Assembly (NCBI RefSeq): GCF_006345805.1
Contig: NC_043018.1
Location: 29,450,001 to 29,514,000 of the forward strand
DNA length: 64,000 nucleotides
Direction: 5' to 3'
From: Octopus sinensis
Lineage: Eukaryota
Part shown: positions 35,491-61,264 of the stretch, piece after piece
How the letters are laid out: the number at the start of each line of letters is the position of its first letter
Numbering within the stretch: position 1 is the first letter of the stretch
The notes under the pieces: model-generated
The model's input: the letters and a program-made list of their open reading frames with translations, nothing else
What the model was told of the DNA's origin: nothing
Database searches by the model: none
Position numbers and translations under genes: made by a program

Positions 35491-35847
35491 TAGCACTTCT
35501 TATGGTAAAAATTGCAACATATTACAATTTATCAGAGAAAAAAAATATTTATTCGAAAGTTCTATTATGAGAAATATAAAGAACTAAGATTCATCAATTT
35601 TTCCCCTCTCGTTACAAATTTACATGACGTAGATTGCAGAAAAGAAAAGCGAGGTGAGAGGTCACAGTAAAAAAAGTAAAGCAGTGACAGAACGCTGCAC
35701 CTGCGCCGATGATTTTTCATTGTCTTATTACACGTTCTTTGGAAGCTGAAGTGGGCAGTGCCAGCGAGTCGTCTAAGCAACATACACACATACATACATA
35801 CATACATACATACATGCATACATACATACATACATACATACATACAT

Positions 35848-36428
35848 GTGATTAGTAGCTACCTTAAAATGTCACGGTGCTACCTCCCTATGCAGCACGA
35901 TGTTGTTGCTAAAACAATTTACAATGCCATCCACAAAAATGACACCAGAATTGAATACAAAATCCCTATGTTATTGAATACATTCATAAAAACCAAACCA
36001 AGGAGTACTGATGGATTATTCCCATCAAATCCACTCTTAGATATAAACGTAGCACACCGGATATTGTTTGAGATGTAAATGTCTCTTTGAAAATCAAAGA
36101 AAAACGGGATATCTATAGACAACTGCTTTGAAACCTCCAGCTTCTTTATCCAGACTATGAATTCATATCAATAATAATTGGAGCACTAGGTTATGTATGT
36201 AAATGATTAAAGGAGAACCTGGATAAACTGGTAAGGGATTATCAGAAAGAGAAATCGACCGGCTGATTCGTACATTACAATTGCAATCTATGGAACAGTA
36301 AAAAATATGCAAGAGTTTTCTCAAGTTCCAAATGTGAATTTGTCTGTGTTAAGATGGAGCTTTGTATCTTTGTTGGAAACCGGCTCCTTCCTCAGTGGAT
36401 GATTTATAGTAATTAAAAAACAGAAGAC
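35848..36428 (+). mobile_element. RLE-type non-LTR retrotransposon 3' fragment in (ATAC)n, copy 1
   Basis: HVISS..KMS..YLPMQHDVVAK..DVNVSLKIKEKRDIYRQLL.NLQLLYPDYEFISIIIGALG..LQLQS..GTVKICKSFLKF; ATAC repeats at 35781-35847 and from 36429. Confidence 0.85.
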
Positions 36429-36612
36429 ATACACATACGCACATACATACATGCATACACATTTAGATATACATATAAGGAGGTAGAAGAGAGGATGTCG
36501 CGAATCAAATCAGAAGCTGTGTTAGAGAGAAAGATTTCAATAAATTATACTAATGATTGTAATTGCTTTTAAGAGAATTTTGTGGACGCTTTTATATTTT
36601 GTCATCTTATCG

Positions 36613-36830
36613 AAGAAGAGGAAGAAGAAGAACAAGAAGAACAAGAAAAAGAAGAAAAAGAAAAAGACGAAAAGAAGAAGAAGAAGAAGAAGAAGAAAAG
36701 AAGAAGAAGAAGAAGAAGAAGAAGAAGAAGAAGAAGAAGAAGACGAAGAAGAAGAAGAAGAAGAAGAAGAAGAAAAGAAGAAGAAGAAGAAGAAGAGCAA
36801 CAACAACATGAACAGCAGCAACAACAAAGC
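36613..36830. repeat. (GAA)n then (CAA)n microsatellite
   Basis: Direct reading. Confidence 0.93.
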
Positions 36831-37259
36831 AACAACAGCAAATGTCGGACAGAATAACGAGTGTTTTTTGTTTCTTTTTTGTAAGAAACGATTTCTGGAA
36901 ATAATGTTTCTAAGAAATGTTCTATCAGATAAAACATAACAACAACATAAGTCATATATGAAATACCAGACATGAATGATGATGATGAAAACGATGATGG
37001 TGATGATGAGAATGAGGATGGAATTGGTGGTATGGACAGCAGTGAATATGATCGTTGTGATGGCGTTACTGACGACGCAATAGTGACAGTGGTAGTGATC
37101 GTAATGTTGTTTGATGATAGTACGTAAAGCTAACAATAATGATGGTGGTGGTGGTGGTACAGTTATTAATGGTGATGGTGATCATGTTGCATGCTGATAA
37201 ATTTTATATATATATATAAATACCAGTTTATTTGTTATAAGTATACACAGACAACTCAA

Positions 37260-37306
<47 letters not shown>

Positions 37307-37333
37307 GACTAAACAATATATAATAAATAAAAA

Positions 37334-37434
37334 GACTACGTACGTTTCGTGGCTATAAATTGAATTCGAATTACAATTAAATTTAGATTTAATCAAAAAA
37401 CAATTTAATTGAAAGTAGAGTGACTCCTCAGGTC
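37334..37434 (-). ncRNA. Type I hammerhead-ribozyme-like motif with intact core
   Basis: Minus strand gac-CTGAGGA-gt..(long AT-rich stem II)..ac-GAAAC-gtac-GTA-gtc. Confidence 0.6.
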
Positions 37435-37538
37435 AACAATAATAACAATGATAGTTAAATAAATAATCAAATAGAATTAAACAATATTTCTTAAAGAAAT
37501 ATGATTATTATATATATACCTAATCCTATACCTAATCC

Positions 37539-37612
<74 letters not shown>

Positions 37613-37944
37613 AACGTGTGTGTGTATACAAAATGATAATTATTGTTATAAGATTGGATGAACAGGTTTTAATCTAACATTCCTAACAATTGTTGCTGTG
37701 CATTGTCATCACCTGATAATTGCCGTAATTTTCACATACTATACATATATTATGATCCAGCAATAGCCGTATCCCGGCACATCAGTAGGTGAGTGGCACT
37801 GAGAGCGCATCTGAATCACCTACAGTTGATTGTTTTATATCGATATGGTATTTTTAGCATTCCATTGACTACGAGCAACACGGAAATTCAAAGAGATGCA
37901 ATTGGTAAAACCCACCAAAATAAATTATTCGAAATATACATAGG

Positions 37945-38440
37945 CGTGGTTGTGTCGTAAGAAGTTTGCTTCCCAATCAAATGGTTTTGGGTTCTGTCCC
38001 ACTGCATGGCACATTTGGCTAGTGTCTATTACTTATAGACTCAGGCAGTCCAAAGACTTGCGAATGGATTCAGTAGATGGTAACTAAAAAGAAATCCGGC
38101 GTATATTTGTATGTATAGGCGTAGGAGTGGCTGTGTGGTAAGTAGCTTGTTTACTAACCACATGGTTCCGGGTTTAGCCCCACTGCGTGGAACCTTGGAC
38201 AAGTGTCTTCTACTATAGCCTCGGCCCGACTAAAGCCTTGTGAGTGGATTTGGTAGACGGAAACTGAAAGAAGCCCGTCGTATATATATGTATGTGTGCG
38301 TAACTGTCTGTGTTTGTTCCAGCATGGCCACAGTCAAATGACTGAAACAAATAAAAGAAAAAAGGGTGTACACACGCAGACACACACACACACACACACA
38401 CATACATACATATATATATATATATAATATATATATATAT

Positions 38441-38486
<46 letters not shown>

Positions 38487-38527
38487 GTATATATATATAA
38501 TATATATGTATTATATATATATATATG

Positions 38528-38603
<76 letters not shown>

Positions 38604-38870
38604 TATATATATATCGATATATGTATGTATTTATGTATGTTATGTATGTTTGTATCTGTGTGTGCTTGTCCCCCATCACCGCTTGACAACCGGTTTTGGT
38701 GCGTTTACGTCTCCATAACTTTTAGCGGTTTGGCAAAAGAGCCGATAGTATAAGTAATAGGTTCCAAAAAATAAGTACTGGGGGTGATTTTTTCAACAAA
38801 AACTCTTGGGGGCGATGCCCCAGCATGGTCGTAGTCAATTGACTGAAACAAGTGAAAGAACCAGAAAATA
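37945..38870 (+). mobile_element. Composite SINE family D: tRNA head(s), internal microsatellite, 3' module
   Basis: Heads at ~37945 and 38118 (gtggctgtgtggtaag..ggttccgggtt..cttggacaagtgtcttctactatagc); 3' module 38650-38870 ending ccagcatggtcgtagtcaattgactgaaacaagt. Confidence 0.75.
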
Positions 38871-39047
38871 TAAGGAAAAGACAACATAAATTAACAAAAC
38901 TCCTTATTCAGCTCGTTTTTAGCAACAACATATCTGGCCTTTTATGAAGATATATGAACACTTGAGATTATAATGTTGCAAATACATAACCTAGATGAAT
39001 TTCTCATCTTCTGACTCCGAATGTAGTAATTCGCGCGTGGTCAATCT

Positions 39048-39625
39048 TGTTACGATAGCTGGATATCAACTTGTCTGCCATAAGCTTAATTTTAGTCACG
39101 TCTTACCATAGCGGGACACCAACTTGTCTGTCATAAACTTTATTTACTTGTTAGCATAGTAGGATACCAACTTCTCTGACAAACTTTATTCTAATCACTT
39201 GTTACCATAGCGGGATATCAACATAATTAACTTCCATTAACTTAATTTTAGTCACGTCTTGCCATAGTGGGATGATACCTAATTGTCTGCTATGAACTTA
39301 ATTTATGAACTTGTTACCATAGCACAATAACAACTTGTCTGACACAAACTTCATTTTAGTCACTCATTACAATAGCAGGATACGAACGCGTTTGCCATAA
39401 ACTTAATTCTAGACACTTGCCACAATAGCATGATAGCAACTTGTCTGACAAACTTAATTTTAGTCACTTGTTATCATAGCGGGATACCAACTTATCCACT
39501 CATACTTAATTTTAATCACCTGTTACCATTAGGGGATACGAACATGTTTGCTATAAACTTAATTTTACTCGCTTGTTACCATAGGGGTATACCCCCTTGT
39601 CTGCTCATAAACTTAATTTTAGTCC
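39048..39625. repeat. Diverged ~53-bp minisatellite, about 11 units
   Basis: Consensus by eye: gttaccatagcgggataccaacttgtctgccataaacttaattttagtcactt. Confidence 0.9.
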
Positions 39626-39679
39626 CTTTTAAGGATGTCCCTACAGATATTTTATCGAAGTTATAGCCAGCTCTGATTC

Positions 39680-39847
39680 ACTGGGCTAAACACAGAGGGG
39701 ACAAACAAGGACAGACAAACGGATTAAGTCGATTACATCGACCCCAGTGAACTGGTACTTAATTTATTGACCCCGAAAGGTAACGGCAGACGAAATACGG
39801 CTACGCATTTCGCCCGGCGTGCTAACGTTTCTGCCAGATCGCCGCCT
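39680..39847 (-). mobile_element. SINE family A with internal deletion
   Basis: Tail, body and head in reverse complement; the B-box region is missing. Confidence 0.85.
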
Positions 39848-41162
39848 TTTAATGACTACGAAGTAAATAATAATCTTTGTGCTCTCCCGTGCGTATGTAC
39901 GGATGTGAATTTAAATATACTTTGAGACGAAACCTAATCCATATCAGGCTGGCAACATAACTATCATTTTATCTAACGTCCAAACGACAAAATCTAAATA
40001 GATTCATAACATATTTCAATATATAAGCAAACACATATTTAAAATGACAATATCGGTTATTGTTTGCACTATCGAGCATTTCCGATGAAAAATTTATGTT
40101 TCGGTATTTGCAACATTCACAATAATGTGATAGAATTATGAAGGCTTTACTTGTGTTTGTCATTATGTGTGTGTCAGTTCGTGATATTTTCTCTAAAACT
40201 GTATATATATAAGTATATGTATATATATAATTATATACGTATTATGTAAGCATTGTGTATATATCAATATTCCTGTGAAATTCCTAAGCTTTCATATGTA
40301 TGTATATATATATAGATATATATATATATATAACATTGTGCGTAATTATTACTGTTTCATAAATATATTCCTTAATGATTATCGGAACTCAAGTGTTTCT
40401 TCTATTTTCCTGAGGAATTCGTAGACTAATCAAAAACTATACAATCGTGTAAAGAATAAATGATCATCATATAACATCGGTACTGTCTCTGAATAAAGCT
40501 TTCACTGTATATATACATAAATATGTACACACAAATATATACACACTTTAATATTGAACACACGTTATGTGTGTCTGTGTGCGTGTATTTACCTGCTTGC
40601 TTACCTACCTATACTTACCAATATATATATGTATATATTTACATATATATACACATGTATATATACACACAGTGAGACATATAGATATTTGTGTATAAAT
40701 AAAGGTGTATATTTACCAATATGTGTATATTTACACATACGTATATGTATCTATGTATATATATGTATGTGTCTGTATATACGTATACAATCTGTTTCCT
40801 GTTATCTCTTCAAGTCTGGTTATTTTTGTAAGCAGAAATTTGATTTTAAAAAAAGCAAAAAAAATATGAGAAAACTTTAAAAGTTCACTTCCGGCAAAAA
40901 GAGTTACGCAGAGTTGATCTCCATGCTGATCGTCGAAAACCGGAAGTTGACTAATAGACTATATTTGCTGCTTTGAAACAGAAGGGTGTCCACGTGTCTA
41001 TCTTTTTCTCTGTATACTTGTTTGTTGCTCGTGTGTATGTACGTATGTAGGTGTGAACAATATTGAAGTATACCTTCCATGTGTTCGTAGGTCTGCTATT
41101 GTCGAGCGTTTAGGTGTGAATGCATATTTATGCATCCGGATGTGTCTACTATATTTAAATGG

Positions 41163-41385
41163 ACGAGCTGGCAGAAACGTTAGCACGCCGGGCGAGACGC
41201 GTAGCCGTATTTCGTCTGCCGTTACGTTCTGAGTTCAAATTCCACCGAGGTCGACTTTGCCTTTCATTCTTTCGGGGTTGATAAATTAAATACCAGTTTC
41301 GCACTGGAGACGATGTAATCAACTTAATCCCTTTGTCCTTGTTTGTCCCCTCTATGTTTAGCCCTTTGTGCGCAATAAAGAAATA
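41163..41385 (+). mobile_element. SINE family A, full monomer
   Basis: Complete head, body and tail; tatttaaatgga appears on both sides (TSD-like). Confidence 0.92.
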
Positions 41386-42597
41386 TATATTTAAATGGAT
41401 GTGTGTGCGCCAGTGCGGACGTAGAGATGTTTTTGTGTGTCGTGTAGCACTGTGACTGACTTGGTCCAGTGTTTATGTGTATTTGTGCGCTGTCTGACTT
41501 TTGACTAATGGAAGTTGAATGATTTCGTAATCGACGGTGGTTTCTTCGTCTCTGTGGTCAGATACTACGGATGCAAAGCGGGACGCAACGAAGAGAGAAA
41601 AGATGCCCTCCTAATAACCGCTTATCTGTTTCGTCGAGCATCTATCGTCGTCAGGTTTTACTTTTTACAGCGAGCTGGATGATACTAGAGACTTAGGAAT
41701 ATGTAATGTGATTGATACGTACGACCAAAACATCCAAGTGGTGCTGCAGCATGGTCACAGTTCAATGACTGAAGCAAGTCAAAGAAATAATAGATGACAA
41801 TATAAAGGTACATACCAACACTTTTTCTACGTTTCTAGGTACGTATATAGTAATATATTAGTATATTTGGTTACATACATAATCTGCCAGTACGTGTTAC
41901 AGGTATGAAGTGGAAAGCCCTACTGACGATTGATTATTCAGCTTTGGAGACGGACAGATCAGGTAGCATATTATGAACGGAGTGTAGTAAGCGTGGGCTA
42001 AATATGTTGTGAGGTTCTGACTTGTGGGTTGGGTGAAAAGACGGCATGGGTGTGATGTGATGGTGTGGGGATAGTGGTAGGAAAGGTATTTGTTGGGGGA
42101 AGCGCAGCATGGCTAGCTGTGGGATGGGATGGAGTAGAAGCAGGGAGTAAGGGTGTGTATTTTTTCTTCTCTTTTTTGCTAACAAAAGAGGATCGCTGGT
42201 GGAGTTGAATAAGGGGAACGAAGCTTTAGGTGTGCCACAGATCTTGTAGATGTCCGATCAGTGTCCTATGTAATATATAATTGTTGATATTGAAAACCCC
42301 GACTATATTTTTCAAATTAGCAAATTCTAAGGCATATGAGCAGGCAGGATCGGTAGCGCATCAGACAAAATACTTAGCGACATTTCTTCCGACATTTTCC
42401 CAAGTTTAAATCCTGTCGAGGGCAAATTTGCATTTCATTCCCCTTCGAGTTCGATGACATGAAGTATCAGTCAAATACTGGATCGATGTTATCGACTTTA
42501 TCCTTCCTCTTCAATATTACCGGGCTAGAATCTTGCAATGGGCCACCGTCCTTTTCAGAGACAATATTATGATCTTAGTTGTGTTTATACCAAGGAG

Positions 42598-42990
42598 AAG
42601 GCGGCGAGCTGGCAGAAACGTTAGCATGCCGGGCGAAATGCGTAGCCGTATTTCATCTGCAGTTACGTTCAAATTCCGCCAAGGTCGACATGCCTTTCAT
42701 CCTTTCGGGGTTGATGTATTAAGTACCAGTTACGCACTGGCGTCGATATAATCGACTTAATCCGTTTGTCTGTCCTTGTTTGTCCTTTCCGTGTTTAGCT
42801 CCTTGTGGGTAGTAAAGAAATAGGTATTTCGTGTGTCTTTAGGTTCCGTGTCCAAATGCTACCGAGGTCGGCATTCTTTCATCCTTTTGGGGTCGATAAA
42901 ATAATTACCAGTTGTGGATTAGGATCAATGCAATCGGTTTACACACTCCGACCCACGACATTTCAGGTCCTGTGCCTATATTAGAAAACA
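42598..42990 (+). mobile_element. SINE family A dimer
   Basis: Full monomer, then a headless second unit starting ggtatttcg and ending gtgcctatattagaaaa. Confidence 0.85.
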
Positions 42991-43623
42991 TATGCCATGG
43001 GAATCGGTAACCGGCTTTATGATAATTAAGTCTCAAGGAAAAAGGTTTTCTCGTTATTTAGCCTTAAATAGGAATCGCTGTAAAATACGTTTCCTTGACA
43101 TCATACAAATAACCGTACACAACTCACACACAAAAGCACAAACTCGTATATGAAGGAGCAAAAAATACGAAATCGCTGGCTACAAGACAAATATTACAAT
43201 CGAAAATAAAACCATTTAACAGAATCAAAACAAATAAAAACGCTATTTTCTAATTATATTTGAAGAATTAAAATAACTATACATATTAACAACCTGGAGA
43301 TAACAGCATTACGTGAACCGCACAATTCTGTGTCTGGACACCGTATTACCATATGCATAATACAGATACGGAACTTTATTTCAAGAGATATAGAGACTGG
43401 TAACAAAAGAATAAGGAAAACGAGGAAATTTAGCAATAAATTTTGGCAAAGATTTATGGTCTGGAATCATGTTTTTGGCAAGGTCAGTCTTGGTCTCTGC
43501 ATCAGCTCTATGAATAATCAATGTGGTTTCTCGTTAGTGAAAATTTTCCGCCTTTTGTTGTTATTTTCATATATATGTATATATATATATATTGTGTGTG
43601 TGTAAATATATATATATAATATA

Positions 43624-43699
<76 letters not shown>

Positions 43700-43886
43700 G
43701 ATATATATGCATGTGTGTATATATGTATTTATATAGGTATGTATATGCAGAAATAGGATAAAATTGTATTTATTCAGAAAAATAGATTCATCACACATGC
43801 ATGAATACGTATATACATATTTACATACACGCACACACACGCACACACACACACACACACACACAACACACACACACACACACATA

Positions 43887-43917
<31 letters not shown>

Positions 43918-44049
43918 CATATATATCTATATATGTATACATATGTATATGAATATATATGAGTCTGTGTGAATATACATCTGTTTATATACATCTGTTT
44001 TTATATACATATAAATATATATATATATACTCACACACGCACGCAACAC

Positions 44050-44560
44050 ACAGGGTGCGGTGAATAAACTGTCGTCTAAATTAGGCAACACTGAAAATAG
44101 CACTTGGTAGTTTGGTGGCCAGATGTTAAGGTGGCTGTGGTCGCAGAAATTGTCTGATAACCATGAGTGAGCTCTCATTATTGTGAGACATGATGCAGTG
44201 TCCTGTTGCCAGACAGAGTCTTCCAGCAACCACCCTCTTCGCCCAGGGCAGCAGTACCTTCTCCTGGCACTTGATGTAGGCCTCCATGTTGAGCCTGAGA
44301 CCGTGTGGGAAGACGAATAGAGGCATAACGTCGCCATCACTTGTTTGATATTCATCAGTCTCGGCACATGTCCTCAGATTGCACTCTCCTCAGATTGACA
44401 CCCAAATACTCTGAAATGTTCGGATTAGAACTTCCAGCGCGAATGCCAAAGAGAACAGCATGTCGTTTCCCAAAAAGGTTGACTATTGAAAAGTTTGCAA
44501 GACGGAACGAACATTTTAGAAAATTTTACCGGTGAGTGGAAATTTTACCGGTGAGTGTGT
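44050..44560 (-). mobile_element. Internally deleted Tc1/mariner-superfamily element (maT/DD37D-like)
   Basis: N-terminal RHAVLFGIRAGSSNPNISEYLGVNLR and C-terminal MPLFVFPHGLRLN..LLPW..VWQQDTA..WLSDNF..IWPPN; cagggtg at the left end. Confidence 0.75.
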
Positions 44561-44685
44561 TAAATTGTAAGGCACTAAAAGAGAATGACTCTCCCCAGAC
44601 ACAGCAGAATATGCTTCAACACACGAACTCACATAAAGAATCTCACAAACCAAATCCAGAAATTATATATATACATATATATATA

Positions 44686-44889
44686 GTTAATCCAAACAAG
44701 AAAGCACAAAAAAACACAACAACGCGAGGACGTGGAACAAATATAGTATTATTGGACGCTCAGGAAAGGAGGAAAGAAGGAGGGTTTAACGTTTCGAGCG
44801 GAGCTCTTCGTCGGAAACATAGGAGAAGGAAAGATCCAGAGAAGGGAAGACAGAGGAAAAAAATTGCCAACGGTACACACGAGGTCACA
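44686..44889 (-). mobile_element. 204-bp Penelope-type solo pLTR/retrozyme-like unit between (TA)n tracts
   Basis: Contains a minimal hammerhead at 44784-44818; TA repeats on both sides. Confidence 0.65.
44784..44818 (-). ncRNA. Minimal type I hammerhead motif (U4C variant)
   Basis: gttt-CCGACGA-a-gagc-tcc-gctc-GAAAC-GTT-aaac; stems I and II pair fully, and stem III is the palindrome AACGTT. Confidence 0.7.
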
Positions 44890-45599
44890 TTTATATATAT
44901 ATATATATATAAATATAATTAATATAACTCTTTTTTTATTTATTTCACCCCCATAGTCAAAAATTTCTTTTATACTTTCAAAGAACTACTACCCAATCCA
45001 GTGAGGTATGTGTTACCTTTGTCCCTATACCTCGCCCTCCTCTTTCTCTCTCTTTCCCTCTATCTATAGTAAGCACAATCAAACACACAGACACAAACCG
45101 TTCACCTCACCACTGTCTGTTTTCTGACATCCACCCATCCACAAAGCCAATCACGCACACACATATATACACACACACACACACTTTAATGAGGTTATAT
45201 ACAGTCACACACACAGACACTCATTCACAAAAGAAAATTCACCATTCATTTGAACTACACCCTTTCACCTTCCTATTCTTATGCCTCTCTTCTCCTACTT
45301 CGTTTGAACTCTTGAACCTTTAGAACCTTCTAGAATTTTCTACATCCAACCATTTTGACGTCATTCCTTATAAAGGAATTTTTTAAAGAGACACTCATTA
45401 TCGCTATGGGCTCCATGTGAGCAGTCATCTAAAAATTTTTTGTGCATCTTGATGTTGACATAAGTTCCTTGCTTTTTCCTGACGAGAAAGCGGCATAATA
45501 TACTCCTTATTCCTTCGCAATTAGGAATATGCAGCCTTCGAAACATATGTCGAAGATAAAGGAATTTTGTTAATTCGTCGTTCAACTCCATTCTTTCAT

Positions 45600-45660
<61 letters not shown>

Positions 45661-45730
45661 GCGGGGACAAACACAGACACACAAACATACATACACACAC
45701 ACACACACACTCATATATATATATATACAT

Positions 45731-45849
45731 ATATAGGGTCATATCACGTTGAAAGCGCCGGTTCTCATCTGATCACCGATGTCAAACAACATCGAGCCTA
45801 GTTAGTGCTTAGACGGATGAACGCTTAGTAAATCTCGGTGCTGTAAGCA
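45731..45849 (+). pseudogene. 5S rRNA: Degenerate 5S rRNA pseudogene
   Basis: ggtcatatcacgttgaaagcgccggttctcatctgatcaccgatgtcaaacaacatcgagcctagttagtgcttagacggatg..ggtgctgtaagc, with many substitutions. Confidence 0.88.
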
Positions 45850-46054
45850 TTCCGTTTAATAATTATATATATACAGTCTTATTGAGTGCTTGTCTCTTTA
45901 GGACATCTATGCAGGGAAAGCACTAATGTATACATACAAAAACAAACGTATAAAATGACATCTGCATTTTCACTCGAGGATTCACAGTCTAATTGTTTGG
46001 GTACATACATAATTTCTGAGGAATTCTATGCCAAATCTTACACACAAACACATA

Positions 46055-50860: not shown

Positions 50861-50914
50861 ACACACACATACACACACACACACCACAGACACACATGTA
50901 TCTCTCTCTCATTA

Positions 50915-50951
<37 letters not shown>

Positions 50952-50953
50952 TA

Positions 50954-51007
<54 letters not shown>

Positions 51008-51403
51008 CACTATGCGTCTTATTCAGCGGAGAAAAGGTAATTAGCAAGTGCTCTGAAAGACTAATAAGATGCAAGCATAAAGTGAGGTGTATATTTTCAC
51101 AACTGGTATAATTAAATAATTATGTATTGTCAATAGTGATAGCCCGCTAGTTAAAGCTGCTCTCCGGTTGACATACACTAATACAGGTGTTAATTATACG
51201 TATTATATCTTTATTTTCAGAATCGACCATGTAGCATGTTCTCCAATTTGTACCTAATTGTATGCAAATTTCCATATACTTGTGCCTGTCACGAGCGAAG
51301 AACAGGTAGGGAATAGGTACTTCGAAAGACTTGATAGGCAAAATTAGATTGAAGACTAAATTTTAGTGATAAGGGTAATTAACTGGATAATCAATGAATG
51401 CAT

Positions 51404-51740
51404 ATACACCGTCTCGACTTACGACCGAGTTACGTTCCAACTTATGGGGGTCGTAAGTCGATCTGGTCGTATGTCGGATTTGTATTTTTTAACACTATTT
51501 TCATTGAAAGTCATCTGATGCTTGAAAGCGACTGTGTGAGAGTTGAGGCAAGCAGCGGATGCCTGGGTCTGGTGGGGGAGACCAACCTTGCTAGATGCTG
51601 CCATAGTTATTGTACGCGTAGCTGCCCAACGTCTGAAAATCGATTTTCTTATTTATAAATTTCATTTTATTTAATTTTTGTGGTCTTAAGGCGGATGGTC
51701 GTAAGCCGCATAGGCCGTAAGTCGAGAAGAATGTGTCTAT
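51404..51740. mobile_element. Pogo/Tigger-like non-autonomous element
   Basis: Inverted ends ctcgacttacgacc / ggccgtaagtcgag with internal repeats of gtcgtaag; the termini are degraded. Confidence 0.5.
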
Positions 51741-51898
51741 GGAGTATGTATTTATCGTCTGAATCCACTGTATAGTGTGATATTGAAATCGTATCTTTTG
51801 GAAGAATATTTCCTTGTATTTGTGCATATCACCATAAGAAAATACTGATATGTTACTCGTTGCCTGAAAGACTATTTGTGGACACGTACAGGTTTTGC

Positions 51899-51996
51899 GA
51901 TATTTGTACGTATGCAAGTGAATAGACGTGTTGTGACATTTGTACGTATGCAAGTGGATAGACGTGTGATATTTGTACGTATGCAAGTGGATACAC
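51899..51996. repeat. Three tandem ~33-36 bp units (gatatttgtacgtatgcaagtggatagacgtgt)
   Basis: Direct reading. Confidence 0.9.
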
Positions 51997-53424
51997 AAGC
52001 GAAAGTGAAGCCAGTACAACCATCCGTCTACGTAAATGAACCGATATGAAGACAAACTATCTGCCTGTGTTTGGACCGATATGAGCATAAACTATTAAAC
52101 AGGGTGGGACAGAGAGGACGGACATTTTTTGAAATGACTATTACTCAGTCCCAAGGGAGGGACACGTGTCCGACAGGTACCATTCGGTCCGTGGTATCTT
52201 AGCATATTTTTTCTCTTCAAGGGAAGCCATGGTACTTTGGACGATAGAGCATCGCGTGTTTGCCTATAACATTTACGTAGAAGATAGCTAATCTGTTACA
52301 GGTGTTCAGTGCGAGTTTTGGCGCCACTTCAACATTCACCGAAATCAGGTTGTTCCCACCCATGACAATCCTACCTAGTTTTGAAATTTTAATAATGAAG
52401 TGTATATAAGCGAATATGAATTTTTAGGCATATATCTATGCATGGGTATCTATATAAATGTAAAGATAAAATGGAAAGATCGCTCAGAGTATGTTTGAAT
52501 GTCCGATTACGTTTTGTGTTTCGATTTTCGCTCTATCTATGGTTGCTTTATGGTTTTTATTTGGCGGTTTTCATTATCAGTGTAAAGCATATTTGATTAA
52601 GTACTCTATTTTGATTACTATTTTATCTTATTTTTTGATTCTGTGTAAGTGTTCTTTTATCATCCAAGTTTCTCATGTATATGAGTAGCAGACGATAACT
52701 AGTAAAATGTATTCTAATGGAAATAAGCGAAACCGGTTAAAAAATTGCGATAACTTTTTCCAAGTGACCAACGAGATATCTCGGCACCTATGATGCACTG
52801 TAAATGTTTGTACATCACCTCATGCACGAGGCGCCTGATGCATGGTGGGTGGAAACGATCGTAGTGGATAATAGTCTCGTCAATTCCATTCTCTTCCTCT
52901 CATACTTTATATAATTATATAAAATTATATGTACATATATTTATGCACACACCCACCCAAAAATATATATATATATATATGTACACTCGTGTGTGCCAGC
53001 ATTTGTGTGCAATGGTGTGTATAGTTCTCTTCACAATGAACTAACGATCTGGCATCAGAAACATCGCCGTCACACGATACAAATTTCTATAACCAAAGCA
53101 GCACGACTTTGCTGATTGAATGGAGAGCTCTGTTGATAGCAAGACAACTTTATAAACTAATTGCTTTCATTTCAATTGTAATGACTTTAACTACCGACTT
53201 AGATCGCTTCATGAATATTAATTAACCATTGATACATGATTACAGATGCTCTCTACTCCCAATAGATACTGACATAGTTTAGCCTCACTTTATAAGAGCA
53301 ATAGCATTTCTTAATTGAAATATTAATGGCGCTTTTAAATATTCACCTTGTTAAGCCAGTAGCTTATTATTCTAGTGAATGTAATACTAACTATTGTTGC
53401 TATAACTGTTTTTATTATCATAAA

Positions 53425-54945
53425 GGCGCCGAACATGCAAAGTCGTTAGTACACCGGGCAAAACGCTTGCGATCTTTCGTCCGTCCTTAAGTTCTCAGTT
53501 CAAATTCCGTTGGGGTCGTCTTTACTTTTCCACCCTTTGGGGGTCGATAAAAGAAGTACCGTTTGAGCACTGCGGTTGATGTAATCGACTATCGCCCTCC
53601 CCTAAAACAAATTCCAACCTTGTGCCTATTGTAGGAAAGAGTATTTAGGCGCGGAGCAGGCAAAGAGTCGTTAGAGCGCCGGAGGAAATGCTTAGTGGCG
53701 TTTCTTCGATGTTACGTTTTCAGTTCCAATACCGCCTCGTTTGAGTTTACCTTTCATCACTTCTGGGTCGATGAAATATATACCAGTTAAGTACTGGGGA
53801 TCAATGTACTCAACTTATCTCCTACCTTGAATAGACTGAACTTGTGCTAAAATTTAAGCCGTTTTATTGATGCAACGAGCTGGCAGAATCGGTAGCGCAC
53901 CGGGCAAAATTCTTAGCGGCATTGCCTCTGTCTTTACACTGTGTTCAAATTCTGCTGATATCTATTTTGCCTTTCATTCTTTCGAGGTCGATAAAAAAGT
54001 ATACCAGTTGTGTAGTGGGGTCAATATAATCGACTAGCATCTTCGCTGAAAATGTCAGGCCTTCATTAGAATGGGTTGCTAATATTAGTGAGGCAGCGAT
54101 CAGGCAGAATCGTTAGTACAAAAGGCAAATGCATTCCTGCCAGTTTTATGCTTTGAGTTCAAACATCACCTTGATCAAATGGGATCTTTTCGGTTTGAAC
54201 GGCAGTTTTTTTTTAATAATTTCCACGTAACTAAACACTTTTAAACTTCGTATATTGGTAGAATGTCTTTATAAAACATCATTTTCTCTTGGCTTTATTG
54301 AGAAAATTCTATAGTTTGTAAGATATTTGTTGTTGTTTTTTCTTCACTTTCTGCAATTTCAACCAAACAATGACATCTATTGAGGTGGAAACATTCTGTG
54401 CCGTATGAACATGTCCCCCGTTTAAGAAACAGATTGGATATATTTACATTTCTGAAGAAAAAAAGGATACCCTTCCCCCCACCTCTAACCCTAACCCTAA
54501 AACAGATTGAAATGCAATAGATCGATACTACGATCATAATTATGGGTGACAATTTCATATGACACCGCTAGAAAAAACTGCCGTTCAAACCGAATAGATC
54601 CATCAAATGTACCTTTCAACTCCTCGGGGTCGATAAAATAATTACTTATTTTGCCCTGGGAGCGATCTATTTGACTTAGCCTCATCCCTCAAAGTTCCTG
54701 GCATTATATCAAAATGTGAAATAATTCTTTTTAAGGGGTTCTGACAGAACAGTTAGTACGTCGACAGAAATATTTAGTAACATTTCTTCCAGTGTAACGG
54801 TCTCAGTTCAAATCCGGCCAAGTCCCATTTTGACTTTCATCCTTTCGGGTCAATGAAGTAAATGGCTGTTGAGCCCTGGCGTCAGTGTAATCGCTCAGCC
54901 GCCTCCCATGAAATTTTAGGCCGTGCGCTTATAGTAAAAATATTG
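53425..54945 (+). mobile_element. Five head-to-tail diverged SINE family A units
   Basis: Heads at ~53425, 53647, 53874, 54090 and 54735; the fourth unit is split by MITE copy 3. Confidence 0.8.
54182..54601. mobile_element. MITE copy 3
   Basis: Same TIRs; perfect TSD atcaaatg at 54174-54181 and 54602-54609. Confidence 0.93.
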
Positions 54946-55471
54946 TTATTGCTGTTATATTAGTAGTGCTGGATCTCAGTCGACATCATAAAGTCATATA
55001 ACTAAGCTGCATACGATACTTTTAATTATTCTGTCTTAGAATATATCCGGTGTCTATAAAATAACAATGATATCTGTCAGAGAGTAAATATTTACAGAGT
55101 ATGATAGGTGTAAATAGAAAGACTTGATGGTTAAAAATAATTAATGCATATATATATATTTAATTTTAATGGCTTGATCAACGGAAGGAGGATGGTGCTC
55201 ATAACAATTTCGAATCCTCTATAACTGATGGCGAAAAGAGAGACATTTTTCGTCAGATCATGGAGTTATCCTAAAAACTCACCACAAAGTGGGCCAGAGA
55301 CCTGCTACTCATTCGGTTTAAAGTGGCTGATGGATTGATTTGTCACTCATCAAAATAAATGATTTCTCCGCACGGCTTACATTCAGTTTCCTATTACTAA
55401 ATTTCTCTGAGACATTGGTCAACCTTAGATTACGTAAATAAAACGAAACTGCACAAAGTATCTCACTATGA

Positions 55472-55945
55472 CTTACTAGTACTTGTACTTGTGACGGCGT
55501 TAATCCAGGGCGGATTGAGCTGGCTTCTTCTCTGGTCCTCACGACATCACGAACCATGGCAGCCCAGGCTCGACGGTCCTGCACGAGGTCACTGGAGATA
55601 TCGAGCCATTCGCGGTTCCATCTGCGCAGACCGACCACCTGCGGACCTGATAGTTCGGAGAGGTCCTCCTTTATCGTCGTTGCCCAGGTCTTTATATGCC
55701 AGTCCCTGCGTTTCCGCCAGTTGGGAAGTGGAAGTGGGAGGAGGACATCGCGAATCAGCTCACCCTCTGGACGCCGGGCCGCATGACCGAACCACCTTAA
55801 GCGCCGTTGTAGAAGCACCGAAGGGAGGGGCTGGAGATTCAGGCGACGATTCGGCAGCGAAGAATGAGGTGGAGATAGGTATTGACGAACAGCTCTAGCC
55901 TTCCCTGTTCGACTACCCTCATAGGCCATGTTTCACAACCATGTT
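55472..55945 (-). mobile_element. 5'-truncated RTE-clade LINE inserted in a SINE family D copy
   Basis: HGCETWPM, RRLRWFGHAARR, WATTIKEDL, DRRAW; caagtacaagta tail; TSD tcactatga at 55463-55471 and 55946-55954. Confidence 0.9.
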
Positions 55946-57075
55946 TCACTATGAGATCGAACTGGAAACCACAGATTAGCAAATCAACCTTCCAACCACA
56001 CAGCCATACTACATTAAATATCAAAGTGGCCGCGTGGAGCTTAGTTGTTTCGCTCATAAACACACACATCGTCCGGTCTGAGATTCGAATCCGCGATCAC
56101 TCAACTGCGAGTCCGCTGCTCTAACCACTAGGCCATGTGCCTCCACGTGAAATGAAATAGTTTACTAAAAATATTCAACACACCACTCGCTCCGGGAATC
56201 GAAACCGTATTCTTGTGAGTACAACACACTAAAGACGAGAACAAGAGTCTTCACAGATACACGCCAGTTATCAACATGAACGATTTCTCCCGCAGAACTT
56301 CCACGAAGTTTCTATCTACCAAATTTCTCTAAAGAGACATTGATAAACGTGAGATAACCTTAAATGAAAATACACAAAGCAACTCACAGTGAGATCGAAC
56401 TCAAAACCACGGCTTAGCCAAACAAACTTCCAACCACACAGCCATGCTACATTAAATATCAAAGTCCAGTTACAATTATTTTCTCATTTCCAATGTTTTA
56501 ATATTTCTCTTACATACAACTAATATTGGCGTTCTAACATTAAAAGTTTCTGGTGTTTGATGTAATTTCTTCAATTAATATATTTATTCAATATTACATA
56601 ATAATTACCAAAGGGAAAATAGAAAAATACGTTTTTTTAATAACGTCTATGTTTATCAAGGCAAATATAATATTAAGCAGCATTTTGTTTTATCTTTCGA
56701 ATCATTGGTTTCAGAATTACAAATAAAAAACATCTGGCTCTGTTAGTAAATTTCAAACGATCCATCCATTTGTAATTCTAATATTTCTCGTACTAAATAC
56801 CCACCGCCACCACCACTGTACAGTAAGAGATACACTAAATCATGTGACTCGCTCTGCTTATTCTTCACAAATGAAGAGAATATGTACTCGTGTTCAGTGA
56901 ATGTAACGTCACATTTGTTTGTAGAGAGTGTGTATATTTATATGTCGTCTGTTGAGCTCAATCTAATGTCTCTCTACTTCTGTCATTATTTAAAACCTGA
57001 TTTCAAATATTTGATAATAAGTTTCCTAATCCTTCCCCAACTTCTCATTCTCCTGTTGCAAATAATAAATGACGG

Positions 57076-57512
57076 GGATCTTTTCGGTTGAACGGCAGTT
57101 TTTTTCTAGCGGTGTCATATGAAATTGTCACCCATAATTATGATCCTATTATCGATCTTTTGCATTTCAATCTGTTTTAGGGTTAGGGTTAGTTAGGGTT
57201 AGGGTTATGGTTAGGTGTGGGGTGAAGGGTATCTTTTTTTCTTCACAAATGTAAATAAACCCAATCTGTTTCTTAAACGAGGGACATATTCATACGGCAC
57301 ATAATGTTTTTACCTCAATAGACGCATTTGATTGGTTGAAATTGCAAAAATTGAAGAAAAAAACAACTAATATCTTACAAACTATAGAATTTTCTCAATA
57401 AAGCCAAGAGAAAAAGATGTTTTATAAACACATTCTACCAGTATACGAAGTTTAAAATTTTTTAGTTACGTGGAAATTATGTTAAAAACTGCCGTTCAAA
57501 CCAAACAGATCC
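57076..57512. mobile_element. MITE copy 4 with longest (TTAGGG)n tract
   Basis: Same TIRs; perfect TSD aatgacgg at 57068-57075 and 57513-57520; ttagggttagggttagttagggttaggg at ~57177-57205. Confidence 0.93.
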
Positions 57513-58639
57513 AATGACGGTTCCGCAGATTCTTGCTTAACAACATGCTCAGGTGATTTGCTAAAAGTGATCAAAAGTTTGCGTTGTCCATTAGCTCACT
57601 CCCTTCATTGAATCAACGCTATCTGTACAGGTGAGCGGTGTACCACACGTCACCGTATTGAAGTCAACGTAGAACAACGAGAGACGTCAGGTCTGAGAAT
57701 CGAAATAACGATCATGCGATCGGGCGCGCAACACCCTGACCACCGAAATAAAATTAGAAAACCACAAATATTTGTTTTCATTGATAACGCTTTCTTACTC
57801 TTGTTATTGTTTAACCTTATAAACCTCATGGAGTAGACATAGAACATTAATCTTACTTTCAGATGTACATATATATATATATAAGCAACAAGGATAGCCA
57901 GAGGTAATGCAGTACGATCGTTTCATGCAACTCCATTTAATTGAACAATGCAATCATTACATCAATTTAAAATGTAGAGCAATCTTCAGTTGCACAAAGA
58001 CATAGAATTTAATTAAATTAGAACAGATGGACACATCAATATAATTATACCTACAATTTCCAAGGGGTTAAAGAGATAGATAAAGATGGTGTCTCTACTT
58101 CAGCATAGAAGTTACTAAAATTATCAAGAAGACTCTGCCTGCCACTGAGTTTTTGTCTTTATGGGGTCAGTTTTAATTTATAGACTAGTTTATCGAATCC
58201 CTTGTATATCTAAGGCTGAGAGAACAGAGGGCAGTATATGTTATGGGTAGGGCTGAGTGGAGTAGACAGACATTCTAGTTGGTATTGCCATAAAGATTCA
58301 TCGTAAGCTGCCAGATAAGTGTATTATTTTGAGAAAATAACACTATTATTTCTACCAGATCTAAAAACCGTATAGAAATTCCCTCGCCGATAACGTATTC
58401 TTGACACGAGGATTCTTCACTAAGAAAATCAAAATCTTATTTATAAAATGTTATACGATGCAGTTTTCGGTTTACAAAATTCTATTTATTGTGTTTTCAT
58501 ATGTTTATACATTTTAGTTGGATTAGCAGTAATCCACAGAATTTACTCGTTTGGAGCAATTTACTAGAATATATAAAACGGGCTGAAGTATGCACCGATA
58601 ATCTGTAGGATTTATGTTTAAATTATTTTTTATCGTTTA

Positions 58640-59190
58640 CTTGTTTCAATAATTGGACTGCAGCCACGCTGGGAATGGATCCTCACACTTAACTTTTTGT
58701 TAAGGTTTTTACTTATATCATCGGGGTCTTTTGCTGAAGTGCTAAGTTACGACGACGTAACTTGTCAAACCTTGGTGGGGGACAGACTCAAAGATACAAA
58801 CACAGACGTGTATTCGTGTGTGTGTGGGTGCATGTGCCTGTGTATGTATATGTATATATGTACATGTGTGTGTGTGTGCGTGTGTGAGTGTCCTCGGCAT
58901 TTCTTATTTCTTTATTGCCCACAAGGGGCTAAACATAGAGGGGACAAACAAGAATAGACAAAGGTATTAAGTCGATTACATCGATCCCAGTGTGTAACTG
59001 GTACTGAATTTATCGACCCCGAATGGATGAAAGGCAAAGTCGACCTCGGCTCAACATTTCAGCCTACCAAATTACCACACAAAGATTTGGTTGACCCGGG
59101 GATATAGCAGGTTACACTTGCCCAACATTCTACAAAGTGGGACTGAACCCGGACTCGTATGGCTGGGAAGCAAACGTCTTGCCAGACAGA
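58640..59190 (-). mobile_element. Composite SINE family D with a nested family A piece (58905-59050)
   Basis: Head at 59060-59190, microsatellite, 3' module at 58640-58810. Confidence 0.7.
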
Positions 59191-59699
59191 ACACTTGCGT
59201 CTTTATCATGTCTATATTTTCCGATAGATTTTGTCTGCTTAGCCGTGTTATACGTAATCAGCTGTATTATCTCTACACATTCAGTAGGATTATCAATAAT
59301 CGGCTAGATTATATGTATATTATCAACTGTAATAAGTTGGTTCATGTGAATTATGTGTTTAAGTGCAAACGGATTAAATGTATTAATCTTGAGAATGTGT
59401 GATGAACTGGATTATGTCTACATTTTTGGTGAGTTATATGTAATCTGATGGATTAGAGGTAATCAACTTGATTAGAAATGTCTTTGTGAGTAATACAATC
59501 GCTTTGTACCTATGTCGTTCTGTGTTGTCTCACTGCATAGAACCTTCGGTAACTTGCTTCTGTCGTAGCACCAAACTGAAAAATGCTTTGTGAGTGAATT
59601 TTGTAAACAGATGTCTGTAGTACATACATACATACATACATACATACATACATACATACATACATACATACATACATAATATGTACATAATATATACAT

Positions 59700-60270
59700 A
59701 AACATGATAGAACTGACACGATGATTTAGGAGAGAAGCGGAATTATTTACAGTTGTGGAAATCAGCTGCTTAGCGGATGTTAAGATAAAGCTAAAGATCC
59801 GCGAAAAAGAAAATACCTATGCTCAACTAATGAGAAACCTACAGTTACTCAACCCATATTACAAGTTCAGGTTCATACCTGTAATTATTAGGGCACTGGG
59901 ATATGCAATGCACTTTCTAAGGGCCAATCATAGGAAATTAGGTTTCTTAAAACCAGAAAGGAGAAGGCTAATTCGAAGACTACAGATCTAATTCATAACT
60001 GGAACAGTAAAAATCTGTAAAACTTGCCAGAAAGTTGTCATTTAACTATATATGCGCGTGACTGGACATACAACTATATGCATGAGAAAACATACGTAAA
60101 ACAATATATTCAAACATGCACATGTACTGACACAAAATACTGCACATATACACATATTAAAAAAACCATGTTGATGGTTTTGAAATTCTAATGAAGGAGC
60201 CTTGGGTCTAATTTAGAAATCTGCTCTTTCTTCATTGGTAAGAAATTTTGAAATAAAACTGAATAACGAC
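59700..60270 (+). mobile_element. RLE-type non-LTR retrotransposon 3' fragment in (ATAC)n, copy 2
   Basis: TVVEISCLADVKIKLKIREKENTYAQLMRNLQLLNPYYKFRFIPVIIRALG..LIRRLQI..GTVKICK; ATAC tracts at 59622-59678 and from 60271. Confidence 0.85.
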
Positions 60271-60355
60271 ATACATACATACATACATACATACATACAT
60301 ACATACATACATACATACATACATACATACATACATACATACGTACATTATGTAT

Positions 60356-60454
60356 GTCATTTTTCAGTTTTATTTTAAGATTTCTTGTCAATAGAGAAAG
60401 CCGGTATCTAATCTAGATCCAAGGCTTCTTCATTGAAATTTCAACATCAACAAC
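60356..60454 (-). mobile_element. Same RLE family, terminal ~100 bp, inverted copy 3
   Basis: Reverse complement of the 60170-60270 end; ATAC repeats on both sides when read on the minus strand. Confidence 0.82.
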
Positions 60455-61264
60455 TATGTATGCATATATGTATGTATGTATGTATGTACGTACGTACGTA
60501 CGTATGTATGTACGTACGTACGTACGTATGTATGTACGTATGTATGTATGTATGTATGTATGTATGTATGTATGTATGTATGCATGTATGTGTGTCTGTG
60601 TTTCATTGTGTGTTTGTGTACCCCTCCCACCGCTTGACAATTTATCCGGCTTTTTTTTACGTCGTCGTTCCTTAACACTTTGATAAAAGAGATGGATAGA
60701 ACATTTTAGCCCTGGTGTCTATTGATCCGATCAAAACTCTCAAGGCGGTGCCCCAGCTTGACTGCAACCTAATAACTTAAACATGTTAAAAACTAAAACA
60801 TAAAGGGCAATGATATGAATCATTGCCTACATTTTCAATTCTATTGTATATAATCAGCTACATATTTATCGTAATTAGCTTTAACTGTCAACAAACAATA
60901 GGCTTATTGACTTGAAATAGAAATGAAAAGAGAATTGAACTGATTCTGCCTGCCCTAAGGATATCAAAGACTGAAAAGTAAATAATTCGATTCAAGGTGC
61001 ACGAAAATAGGAATGGTTAATTCGATTCGCAGAAGGCTGTATCACTTTGCCATTCTCCTTACTGTACCATACTCACCTCTCATTAATTCATGAACTCATT
61101 TCTGAGTCGGAACTAAACTATATAAAATATATGGACAGGTGTAAAACAGAATGAGACAATAGAAATAAGTTCGCGTGTAATTTAGAAATCGGTAATTGAT
61201 ACTGCTTCCGGAAATTTTCTGACGTAGAGTGATATGCGTTTTTCAAAATATCTCTTATCTCTAT

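Follow-up and report, generated by a model that had tools for sequence, protein, structure and literature searches.

Truncated RLE-type LINE copies inserted in (ATAC)n microsatellites of an octopus genome

Three dead retrotransposon copies within ATAC repeats

The window (the whole 64,000 nt stretch of Octopus sinensis DNA analysed here) holds three dead, 5'-truncated copies of an RLE LINE, each of them within an (ATAC)n microsatellite (Table 1). An earlier note on this DNA had claimed three such copies and all were found at the places it gave, with c3 extending over 60356-60456; the remnant peptides it quoted were likewise recovered upon translation. What remains of the coding sequence is the end of an RT-RLE protein that carries the CCHC motif and the PD-(D/E)xK endonuclease, the truncations lying 3' of the RT. 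In c1 the remnant covers the RLE and C-terminus in three frames with stops, keeps ..YLPMQHD.. and TPDIV and ends at ~36337, where the 3' tail directly follows; it is 54.5% identical over 55 aa to P0149 and 64% identical to P0024. The c2 remnant (59725-60045) is open for 88 aa, followed by one stop and then GTVKICK, keeps VVEISC..REKE and shows 58% identity to P0107, 67% to P0001 from O. vulgaris and 51% to P0148. An ACAT-rich 3' UTR stretch (~60046-60150) separates it from the conserved tail (60151-60270). A Pfam search with the window peptides returned no match; there were 106 homologues of the 88-aa piece of c2, and the closest matches of the window remnants come from O. vulgaris and O. bimaculoides.

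Table 1 Copies, flanking arrays and 3' UTR hairpins located in the window
Feature	Position	Strand	Basis
(ACAT)17 array, 5' flank of c1	35780..35847	+	TRF, sequence
Copy c1, 5' truncation within the CCHC motif	35848..36428	+	translation and tblastn to c2
3' UTR hairpin of c1, outer stem GGAGCT..GGCTCC	36355..36388	+	comparison, MFE fold
Degenerate ATAC/ACAC array, 3' flank of c1	36429..36466	+	sequence
(TACA)n array with degenerate 3' end, 5' flank of c2	59621..59699	+	TRF, sequence
Copy c2, 5' truncation at about the HNRPD motif	59700..60270	+	translation, tblastn
3' UTR hairpin of c2	60195..60228	+	comparison, recovered by MFE fold
(ATAC)20, 3' flank of c2	60271..60347	+	TRF, sequence
ATACATAA, short 3' flank of c3, array polarity switches here	60348..60355	-	sequence
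Copy c3, tail only, 101 nt	60356..60456	-	
3' UTR hairpin of c3	60396..60429	-	comparison, MFE fold
(TATG)n on +, which is (ATAC)n on -, 5' flank of c3	60457..60599	-	TRF, sequence

At the protein level c1 and c2 are 53% identical over 55 aa (tblastn E 2e-5) and the c2 tail is 78% identical to c3 over 101 nt. As c1 and c2 can be aligned as DNA in the tail only, they represent two old subfamilies. They also differ between stop codon and tail, where 130-190 nt of degenerate ACAT-rich sequence are found in c2-type copies and are missing from c1-type ones.

All three copies end at GAC|ATAC as the earlier note had described. The 3' junction of c1 reads ..acagaaGAC|ATACACATACGC.., that of c2 ..aataacGAC|(ATAC)20 and that of c3, on the minus strand, ..aaaaatGAC|ATACATAA, the ATAC run downstream of c3 comprising just 8 nt (60348-60355) before the polarity flips into the array behind c2. 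The repeats it had noticed upstream are also there, with (ATAC)n lying directly 5' of each copy on the copy's own strand. Insertion into repeats masks the precise position of the nick as well as a target-site duplication, should there be one, and the constancy of the junction phase does not by itself locate the nuclease cut.

Such an arrangement could reflect chance, passive accumulation in a microsatellite-rich genome, or copies that are not independent owing to segmental duplication. The window is indeed full of simple repeats (55 TRF rows) and c2 and c3 sit in one array cluster. However, perfect ACAT-type runs make up only ~1.7% of the window, counting both strands, yet every copy lies in one and in the same orientation, and chance is therefore excluded; c1 and c2 are 24 kb apart with unrelated flanks and have diverged beyond DNA alignability outside the tail, and the same flanks are seen again, always in sense, in other species and on metagenome contigs that are unrelated. 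Taken together we consider this explanation extremely improbable.

Flanking repeats of copies and relatives outside the window

Eight further cephalopod copies were found, mostly with the same ATAC flanks. These include a copy with arrays on both sides (L005), a c1-type copy nested together with one of c2 type in a single array (L008) and two tandem copies with an ACAY array behind each (L009); the L009 arrays and the array adjacent to c1 are ATAC/ACAC mixtures. The earlier note had proposed a homologue search for full-length copies and this yielded four full-length relatives on metagenome contigs (L010, L011, L013, L014), each flanked on either side by (ATAC)n that reads in the direction of the ORF. 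As these intact relatives have the same repeat on both sides, we are dealing with a real microsatellite-targeting retrotransposon lineage.

In a sample of ~15 copies, which is not a genome census, sense ATAC/ACAY arrays form 12/12 of the informative 5' flanks and 11/13 of the informative 3' flanks, the four full-length copies with arrays on both sides included, and the association with ATAC that had been claimed from the window thus extends well beyond it. Two copies with damaged tails (L007, L008b) were set aside as uninformative. The start of P0029, 'MYVCMY', was considered as an antisense 5' flank and rejected, being a (TATG)n expansion within the L006 ORF. A LINE has been regarded as target-specific where one sequence type occupies >20% of its flanks (Kojima 2015, PMC4494074) and the family lies above this value in our small sample. 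The O. vulgaris copy L001 has a 3' junction without ATAC (GAC|TGACATATATATTT) and L006, whose boundary is uncertain, also seems to lack ATAC downstream. The specificity for ATAC is strong, not absolute, and the insertion preference of the family and of the wider clade is for (ATAC)n/ACAY microsatellites with ATAC on the coding strand.

The (ATAC)n could also be the element's own 3' tail, which would seed microsatellites at random sites and not seek them out. Repeat tails of this kind have parallels in the I factor with its (TAA)n and in the repeats of CR1/L2-type LINEs, the constant junction phase is as expected of a templated tail, and L001 and L006 have little or no downstream array. However, arrays adjoin the 5' ends at many truncation points (c1, c2, c3, L005, L008a/b, L009b) as well as the true 5' ends of the four full-length copies, and a search with nhmmer beyond these arrays found neither the tail nor the hairpin of another copy upstream. 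We therefore consider a tail that merely seeds repeats improbable. An own tail and targeting are compatible, and an RNA repeat tail is probably part of the matching to the target.

The family encodes an RT-RLE protein without an AP-endonuclease

Homologues of the remnants are 1083-1161 aa long and contain RVT_1, an invariant C..C..H..C motif and RPD..E..K. In six full-length proteins (P0148, P0149, P0115, P0109, P0145, P0150) RVT_1 lies in a single long ORF (E 1e-22 to 2e-27), and the same six gave no Exo_endo_phos match, as would be expected of an AP-endonuclease, at E up to 1. Residues C60, C63, H72, C77, D150, E165 and K181 are invariant in alignment A1. In addition the C-terminal profile of the family could be aligned with R2 proteins of solved structure over their CCHC-RLE end (E 2e-4) and the RT region matches R2 structures with low similarity (E 1e-21 to 5e-12). 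The assignment to the RLE type, which the earlier note had made from short peptides, is well founded on these domains, on the lack of an AP-endonuclease and on the R2 profile alignment, and with RT, CCHC plus C-terminal nuclease and no APE the family belongs to the RLE-encoding non-LTR retrotransposons (the R2 group in the broad sense).

The single ORF of the family comprises an N-terminal three-helix domain, RT, a CCHC knuckle and a C-terminal PD-(D/E)xK RLE. An AF2 model of the N-terminal domain has three helices (pLDDT 78) and Foldseek ranked HTH domains highest for it, with E values of 0.4 or more and thus no significant fold match; N-terminal zinc fingers were not seen in the family proteins.

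A conserved stem-loop in the 3' tail

The copies have in common a 3' tail of ~100 nt with a hairpin. The shared hairpin of the earlier note is present in all three copies, its size being larger than was described: an outer stem is followed by a small internal loop and this by an inner stem of 6-7 bp. The hairpin lies ~40-55 nt from the 3' end and is recovered by single-sequence MFE folds. It is conserved in the ATAC and in the TTAC clades (see below) with compensatory changes. Pairing was observed in 72% of cells versus 30-51% with the partner slid by 1-3 columns, and 27 cells were changed on both sides versus 2-14 in the slid controls, a contrast inflated by the model having been drawn by eye from the same sequences. 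None of 500 shuffles reached the observed value, and the pairs 5/31, 14/24, 15/23 and 16/22 each have changes on both sides in 3-5 sequences. The structure appeared only upon anchoring on the CCTTG..CCGG motif, and with a wider MAFFT alignment of whole tails RNAalifold predicted no structure. Rfam searches of the full-length loci returned microsatellite artefacts only and no HDV-like ribozyme. LINEs with stringent-type 3' end recognition are characterized by a conserved stem-loop close to the 3' end that shows compensatory changes, and at the sequence level the tail has this feature.

Flank type follows phylogeny

In the full-length tree ATAC-flanked and TTAC-flanked elements form separate clades with 99% SH-aLRT each. 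The sister clade is flanked by (TTAC)n (L003, L016, L017, L018, L020, L022) and a lepidopteran relative (L012) has (AATAT)n on both sides, and flank type therefore follows phylogeny. In a second tree the window copies c1 and c2 cluster with other cephalopod copies (94% support), and the cephalopod group and the ATAC-flanked clade fall together to the exclusion of the TTAC clade (95%). The Argonauta protein P0244, in which the last 215 aa of the C-terminus are non-homologous and which has a very long branch in this second tree, was placed by the full-length tree.

The nearest outgroup in our searches includes the B. mori protein P0251 (36% identity, RT to C-terminus) and also the group to which the TAA-associated Dong-like remnants of the window have their best match. 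The distinction that had been drawn between these remnants and the ATAC-flanked copies was borne out, as the former best match another subgroup. By these searches and trees the family is related to Dong-like elements. It may belong to R4/Dong or else to HERO, for which the specificity for ATAC may already be on record.

Proposed mode of insertion

The copies in the window very probably are dead-on-arrival copies from two subfamilies of a cephalopod RLE LINE family that inserts preferentially in (ATAC)n/ACAY in a single orientation. Insertion most likely proceeds by target-primed reverse transcription into ACAY-type repeats. The conserved stem-loop in the 3' UTR would be the site at which the protein binds its own RNA. 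The RLE would nick the GTAT strand of the array, upon which the freed 3' end could pair with a few AUAC repeats that terminate the transcript, and this pairing would fix the junction as ..GAY|ATAC. Reverse transcription would follow, and the variable 5' truncations would arise where it stops early, as it often would, or where the cDNA is joined by its 5' end to upstream repeats. For c2-type elements the internal ACAT-rich 3' UTR stretch may provide microhomology and so generate the recurrent ~100 nt tail-only copies c3 and L009b. From the sequence comparisons described above we infer the cleavage specificity, the pairing of the RNA tail and the roles of the hairpin and N-terminal domain.

These tail-only copies share their starting point in the 3' UTR and contain nothing but the tail, and could instead mean that the ~100 nt tail is a short non-autonomous element in its own right, mobilised in trans. 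However, in c1, c2, L001, L009a and all full-length relatives the tail forms one continuous unit with the ORF, no separate head or promoter-like part is present, and the shared start, of which there are two examples only, would be explained by microhomology of the ACAT-rich 3' UTR stretch with the target. We hold mobilisation of such an element to be quite improbable and favour truncation of a c2-type LINE.

Novelty and wider meaning

Microsatellite-targeting LINEs are a known kind, with Dong, Waldo, Mino, Kibi, Koshi and Togen as members. In the searchable literature, which did not include Repbase Reports, we found no RLE element that targets ATAC, ACAT or ACAY, and the (ATAC)n target is new within the microsatellite-targeting RLE LINEs, Repbase/Dfam records aside. 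The family adds one further target to the RLE group and reveals no new mechanism. It shows that close RLE relatives occupy different tetranucleotide repeats, yet have the same protein architecture and 3' RNA hairpin, and so lends itself, as a compact set for comparison, to the question of how an RLE LINE reads its target, which is topical for R2-based gene insertion. Part of the structure of cephalopod ACAY arrays is also explained, as interruptions by nested, tandem or tail-to-tail copies.

A broader reading, which we offer tentatively and regard as somewhat doubtful, is that these elements represent an undescribed and widespread animal RLE LINE clade with >1000 public proteins, the sublineages of which may have switched among (ATAC)n, (TTAC)n and, more distantly, (AATAT)n with one 3' UTR stem-loop being kept, the ATAC lineage having converged with the APE-type Waldo. 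If the N-terminal three-helix domain and the last RNA bases were to encode the switch, the clade would constitute a natural series of re-targeted TPRT machines.

Comparison with known target-specific LINEs

Dong is an RLE LINE of the R4 clade from Bombyx mori and others that inserts in (TAA)n. As in our family a single ORF encodes RT, CCHC and a C-terminal RLE, and insertion is specific for a microsatellite, found at either side of the element in one orientation. The targets differ however, the family occupying (ATAC)n/ACAY and not the (TAA)n that characterizes Dong proper, a long and fully supported branch lies between the family and the Dong-like group, and the Dong-like RLE remnant of the window is only 34% identical to the family over 50 aa.

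Waldo, an APE LINE of the R1 clade, is described in PMC3812793 (citing Kojima and Fujiwara 2003) as inserting in ACAY repeats, and so shares the target class of the family. Waldo has an N-terminal AP endonuclease and belongs to R1 whereas the family has a C-terminal RLE and no APE, which places it apart from Waldo, and the shared ACAY target is therefore convergent.

Specificity for microsatellites is reported for leech families of the HERO clade (Kapitonov and Jurka 2014, Repbase Reports 14:311, as cited in PMC4640811) and Hero families have been annotated in O. vulgaris (PMC13282606). Like the family described here, HERO elements are RLE LINEs from marine and freshwater invertebrates, and part of them are specific for microsatellites. 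Togen, found in fish and near NeSL/HERO, is an RLE LINE with a (TG)n target (PMC4640811); it resembles the family in having a microsatellite target but differs in its dinucleotide repeat, its vertebrate hosts and its lineage.

The 28S rDNA-specific R2 (structures 9nl3, 9dou, 8gh6) has RT, CCHC and RLE in the same order as the family. It differs in possessing a zinc-finger and Myb N-terminus, of which no counterpart was recognised in the family, and in targeting rDNA as opposed to a simple repeat. Recognition of the 3' UTR RNA and target-primed reverse transcription are established in R2, and it is on this model that we infer both for the ATAC-targeting family.

Three truncated copies and their ATAC flanks

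The AT-rich animal DNA of the window (GC ~36%) is dense in simple repeats and holds three 5'-truncated copies (c1, c2 and c3), each directly abutted at its 5' end by an array in ATAC phase on the copy's own strand. All were found where the earlier note had placed them, with the gac ends of its GAC|ATAC junction and with the ATAC repeats it described upstream on the coding strand. Beyond the short 3' flank of c3 lies an array of reverse polarity, the one adjoining the 3' end of c2; these two copies stand tail to tail, and the polarity switch may reflect an inversion or else abutting arrays that each took an insertion. In a blastn self-comparison of the window the c2 tail (the ~100-nt 3' end) matched c3 at 78% over 101 nt and no c1-c2 DNA match was returned, the two sharing 53% identity over 55 aa as protein. 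Searched with a profile built on four of the tails, neither the window nor 20 kb of O. vulgaris sequence yielded another copy. As perfect ACAT-type runs make up ~1.7% of the window (both strands counted), three matches in one orientation, or two independent loci, are not chance; an ATAC association by chance or passive accumulation is excluded, being contradicted by both array density and orientation.

Features of the window and related copies at loci outside it
Feature	Position	Strand	Description
c1	35848-36428	+	5' array 35780-35847; 3' end ..acagaagac, then atacacatacgcacatacatacatgcatacacat
c2	59700-60270	+	5' array 59621-59699; 3' end ..aataacgac, then (ATAC)20
c3	60356-60456	-	5' array 60457-60599; 3' end ..aaaaatgac, then ATACATAA
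c2/c3 tail-to-tail region	60271-60599		(ATAC)n to (GTAT)n switch at ~60348
Dong-like RLE remnant	27458-27900	-	ends in (TAA)n
Dong-like RLE remnant	~29177-29620	-	ends in (TAA)n
Dong-like RLE remnant	31948-32620	-	ends in (TAA)n
Dong-like RLE remnant	31480-31578	-	ends in (TAA)n
LINE fragment	19060-20515	+	GC-rich, 5'-truncated, between two (CTAT)n arrays; zf-RVT C-terminus (ORF 19215-19832), A-rich/T-rich 3' region
Tandem duplicate	21497-22056		280-bp unit, 95% identity
RTE-like C-terminal ORF	55318-55929	-	..LRWFGHAARRPEGE..
Interstitial TTAGGG run	57177-57207		short, ~2.5 units, 100% identity
L001	O. vulgaris chromosome OX597824.1		c2-type; upstream (CCAT)n(ACAT)3; downstream GAC|TGACATATATATTT
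L005	917-bp contig		c1-type; starts (ACAT)5; ends ..aagagat|gcatacatacatacatacata
L006			c2-type; no ATAC in 21 nt past apparent end, boundary uncertain
(TATG)n in L006	215-262		expanded within c2-type ORF
L008			c1-type; ACAT repeats upstream; GAT|ACATACATATATATAA downstream, then directly a 5'-truncated c2-type copy
L009			c2-type copy, then 28 nt ATAC/ACAC, tail-only copy (L009b), long ACAY array
L010 (P0148)			full-length ORF; (CATA)n to ..gagaagtgat|(ATAC)n
L011 (P0149)			full-length ORF; (ACAT)n to ..aaagagac|c(ATAC)n
L013			family of L010, another sample, different 5' junction; (CATA)n to ..gagaagtgat|(ATAC)n
L014			full-length ORF; (ATAC)n to ..gagaacgaac|(ATAC)n
5' UTR motif GGACGTGTGGATTAYCGCTCT	L004 1-60; L010 80-140; L013 100-160; L014 115-160		just inside 5' junction

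The window also contains a LINE fragment whose two flanking (CTAT)n arrays share the variant stretch ctatatgtccatctgtctatttatc. This resembles a long target-site duplication within a (TATC)n array, and the fragment may be a second microsatellite-associated LINE, of APE type.

Protein type of the coding remnant

The 88-aa open piece of c2 retrieved 106 proteins at E <=1e-3 among 1.8 billion representatives. The closest proteins carry Octopus vulgaris and O. bimaculoides annotations, which marks the window as octopod DNA. The long homologues, together with cluster mates P0115, P0109 and P0114 (1130-1161 aa), have one layout common to all, in which an N-terminal region without zinc fingers is followed by RVT_1, an invariant C-x2-C-x8-H-x4-C motif with R(Y/F)YLPLRHD, and a C-terminal part reading HNRPD..(I/V)E(V/F)SCP.D.N...K..EK..(I/K)Y and then (I/V)GA.G..GTVKI.KTF. 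The truncation of c1 falls inside the CCHC motif and that of c2 at ~HNRPD, and c3 is 3' UTR only. Pfam reported RVT_1 and a weak zf-RVT in full-length relatives and no AP endonuclease. The RT region matches solved R2 proteins (E 1e-21) and a C-terminal 260-aa profile found its match (E 2e-4) in bird R2, over the CCHC-RLE end and with agreement at CRHC..H..C, RH, KPDL, VVDVT, EK..KY and G..G. The RLE type proposed in the earlier note is borne out. Among the repeats annotated for O. vulgaris in the literature are five Dong-R4 families with recent activity and two Hero families, whose targets are not mentioned (PMC13282606).

Flanks of further copies

The contigs with full-length ORFs carry more weight than the cephalopod fragments: in L010, L011, L013 and L014 the coding strand reads ATAC, the same as in the window copies. 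Over the alignable parts, identity is 51% between c2 and P0148 and 54.5% between c1 and P0149. Scoring both sides of all copies, we found an ATAC-type 5' flank in 12/12 informative copies and an ATAC-type 3' flank in 11/13, with last bases of GAC, GAT, AAC or GGC. These fractions lie above a working criterion for LINE target preference of one type in >20% of flanks (PMC4494074), by which the family is target-specific. L001 and L005-L009 are copies from cephalopods; of these, L007 and the second L008 copy were left unscored because their tails are damaged. L001, which has no downstream ATAC, is either a counter-example or an insertion at an array edge. That the element's self-made tail seeds the arrays does not explain these flanks, since arrays sit at varied 5' truncation points and also at true 5' ends.

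The expanded (TATG)n of L006 grew out of the sequence ..aacatttatgg.., as present in the relative L002. The GGACGTGTGGATTAYCGCTCT motif is conserved across four full-length elements, ATAC-type or related, and has no Rfam match; a role in 5' processing, as in R2, is possible.

Related clades have other targets

A query with P0148 (RT to C-terminus) returned at least 1196 proteins at E <=1e-10 among 8000 candidates evaluated, nearly all of the matches listed coming from metagenome or read assemblies without annotation. Among the named hits are Argonauta hians (55% identity) and, at 33-36%, Bombyx mori, Euphydryas editha and Diaphorina citri. Flanks of (TTAC)n were seen at L003, L016, L017, L018 (3' side), L020 and L022 (5' side), the junction always being ..a(t/a)acc|ttac, and the lepidopteran relative L012 (E. 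editha CAKOGL010000022.1) is flanked by (AATAT)n upstream (67 units) and downstream. In the L012 gene model the array is treated as an intron.

In a 36-protein tree three ATAC-flanked elements and Argonauta form one clade (99% SH-aLRT) and four TTAC-flanked elements a separate one (99%), with the insect group past a long branch. A second tree, built on the C-terminal part, clusters the window copies with other cephalopod fragments (94%), and this group and the ATAC-flanked clade fall in one set with the TTAC clade outside (95%). The Dong-like remnants of the window (KPDIVV.., IIDIA.., PIV(I/V)GA(L/F)G), the first two of which are a segmental duplicate ~1.7 kb apart, best match a distant subgroup (P0254-P0269) and not the ATAC clade, which confirms the distinction drawn in the earlier note.

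A covarying 3' hairpin and a proposed mechanism

The shared 3' hairpin noticed earlier is real and forms the outer stem of a larger element. All tails have CCTTG..N13-17..(A/G)CCGG ~40-55 nt before the 3' end, and on an alignment anchored on this motif the outer stem is NCC/GGN (longer in cephalopods, GGAGCC/GGCTCC), followed by a small TT/C internal loop and a 6-7 bp inner stem, in which the families differ in sequence with complementarity kept (CTATA/TATAG, CTGTA/TACAG, ATTTC/GAAAT, CTTCT/AGAAG, ATCTA/TAGAT). Across 13 sequences, the same from which the structure was drawn, 72% of cells are paired vs 30-51% with the partner slid 1-3 columns, 27 are changed on both sides vs 2-14, and the covariation score is 0.40 vs <=0.14, with 0/500 shuffles as high. 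Independent MFE folds give the hairpin in c2, c3, L011, L014, L003 and L016; RNAalifold on a looser alignment found no structure.

Recognition of a stem-loop in the element's own RNA is established for R2 and stringent-type LINEs, and by analogy this one is likely a handle by which the RT chooses its own RNA. A transcript ending in a few AUAC units would pair with the nicked GTAT strand, which best explains the constant ..GAY|ATAC junction; as such pairing would set the junction phase, phase alone is no guide to the nuclease cut site. The N-terminal 75 aa are predicted to form three helices (pLDDT 78), with lineage-specific third-helix residues (..HLNEQAKRI in the ATAC type, ..NLRDQASR(I/V) in the TTAC type), and a fold search with this model gave HTH-like matches alone, all insignificant. 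The cDNA may be joined to upstream repeats guided by microhomology. The c2-type 3' UTR has an internal ACAT-rich stretch, and the tail-only copies c3 and L009b share one start point exactly at its 3' edge, which is consistent with such joining; possibly the two are instead a separate tail-only non-autonomous element.

Comparison with known systems

Microsatellite-dwelling RLE LINEs are well known, examples being Dong, which sits in (TAA)n, Togen, which sits in (TG)n, and some leech HERO families (PMC3812793, PMC4640811). ACAY targeting has been described for Waldo elements, which are of APE type, whereas the present family is RLE-type with an ATAC target; our full-text literature searches, which did not extend to Repbase, Repbase Reports or Dfam, turned up no RLE element reported to target it. 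The family belongs to the known kind of RLE LINEs in microsatellites, to which it adds a target that varies between sister clades and a covarying 3' hairpin common to them.
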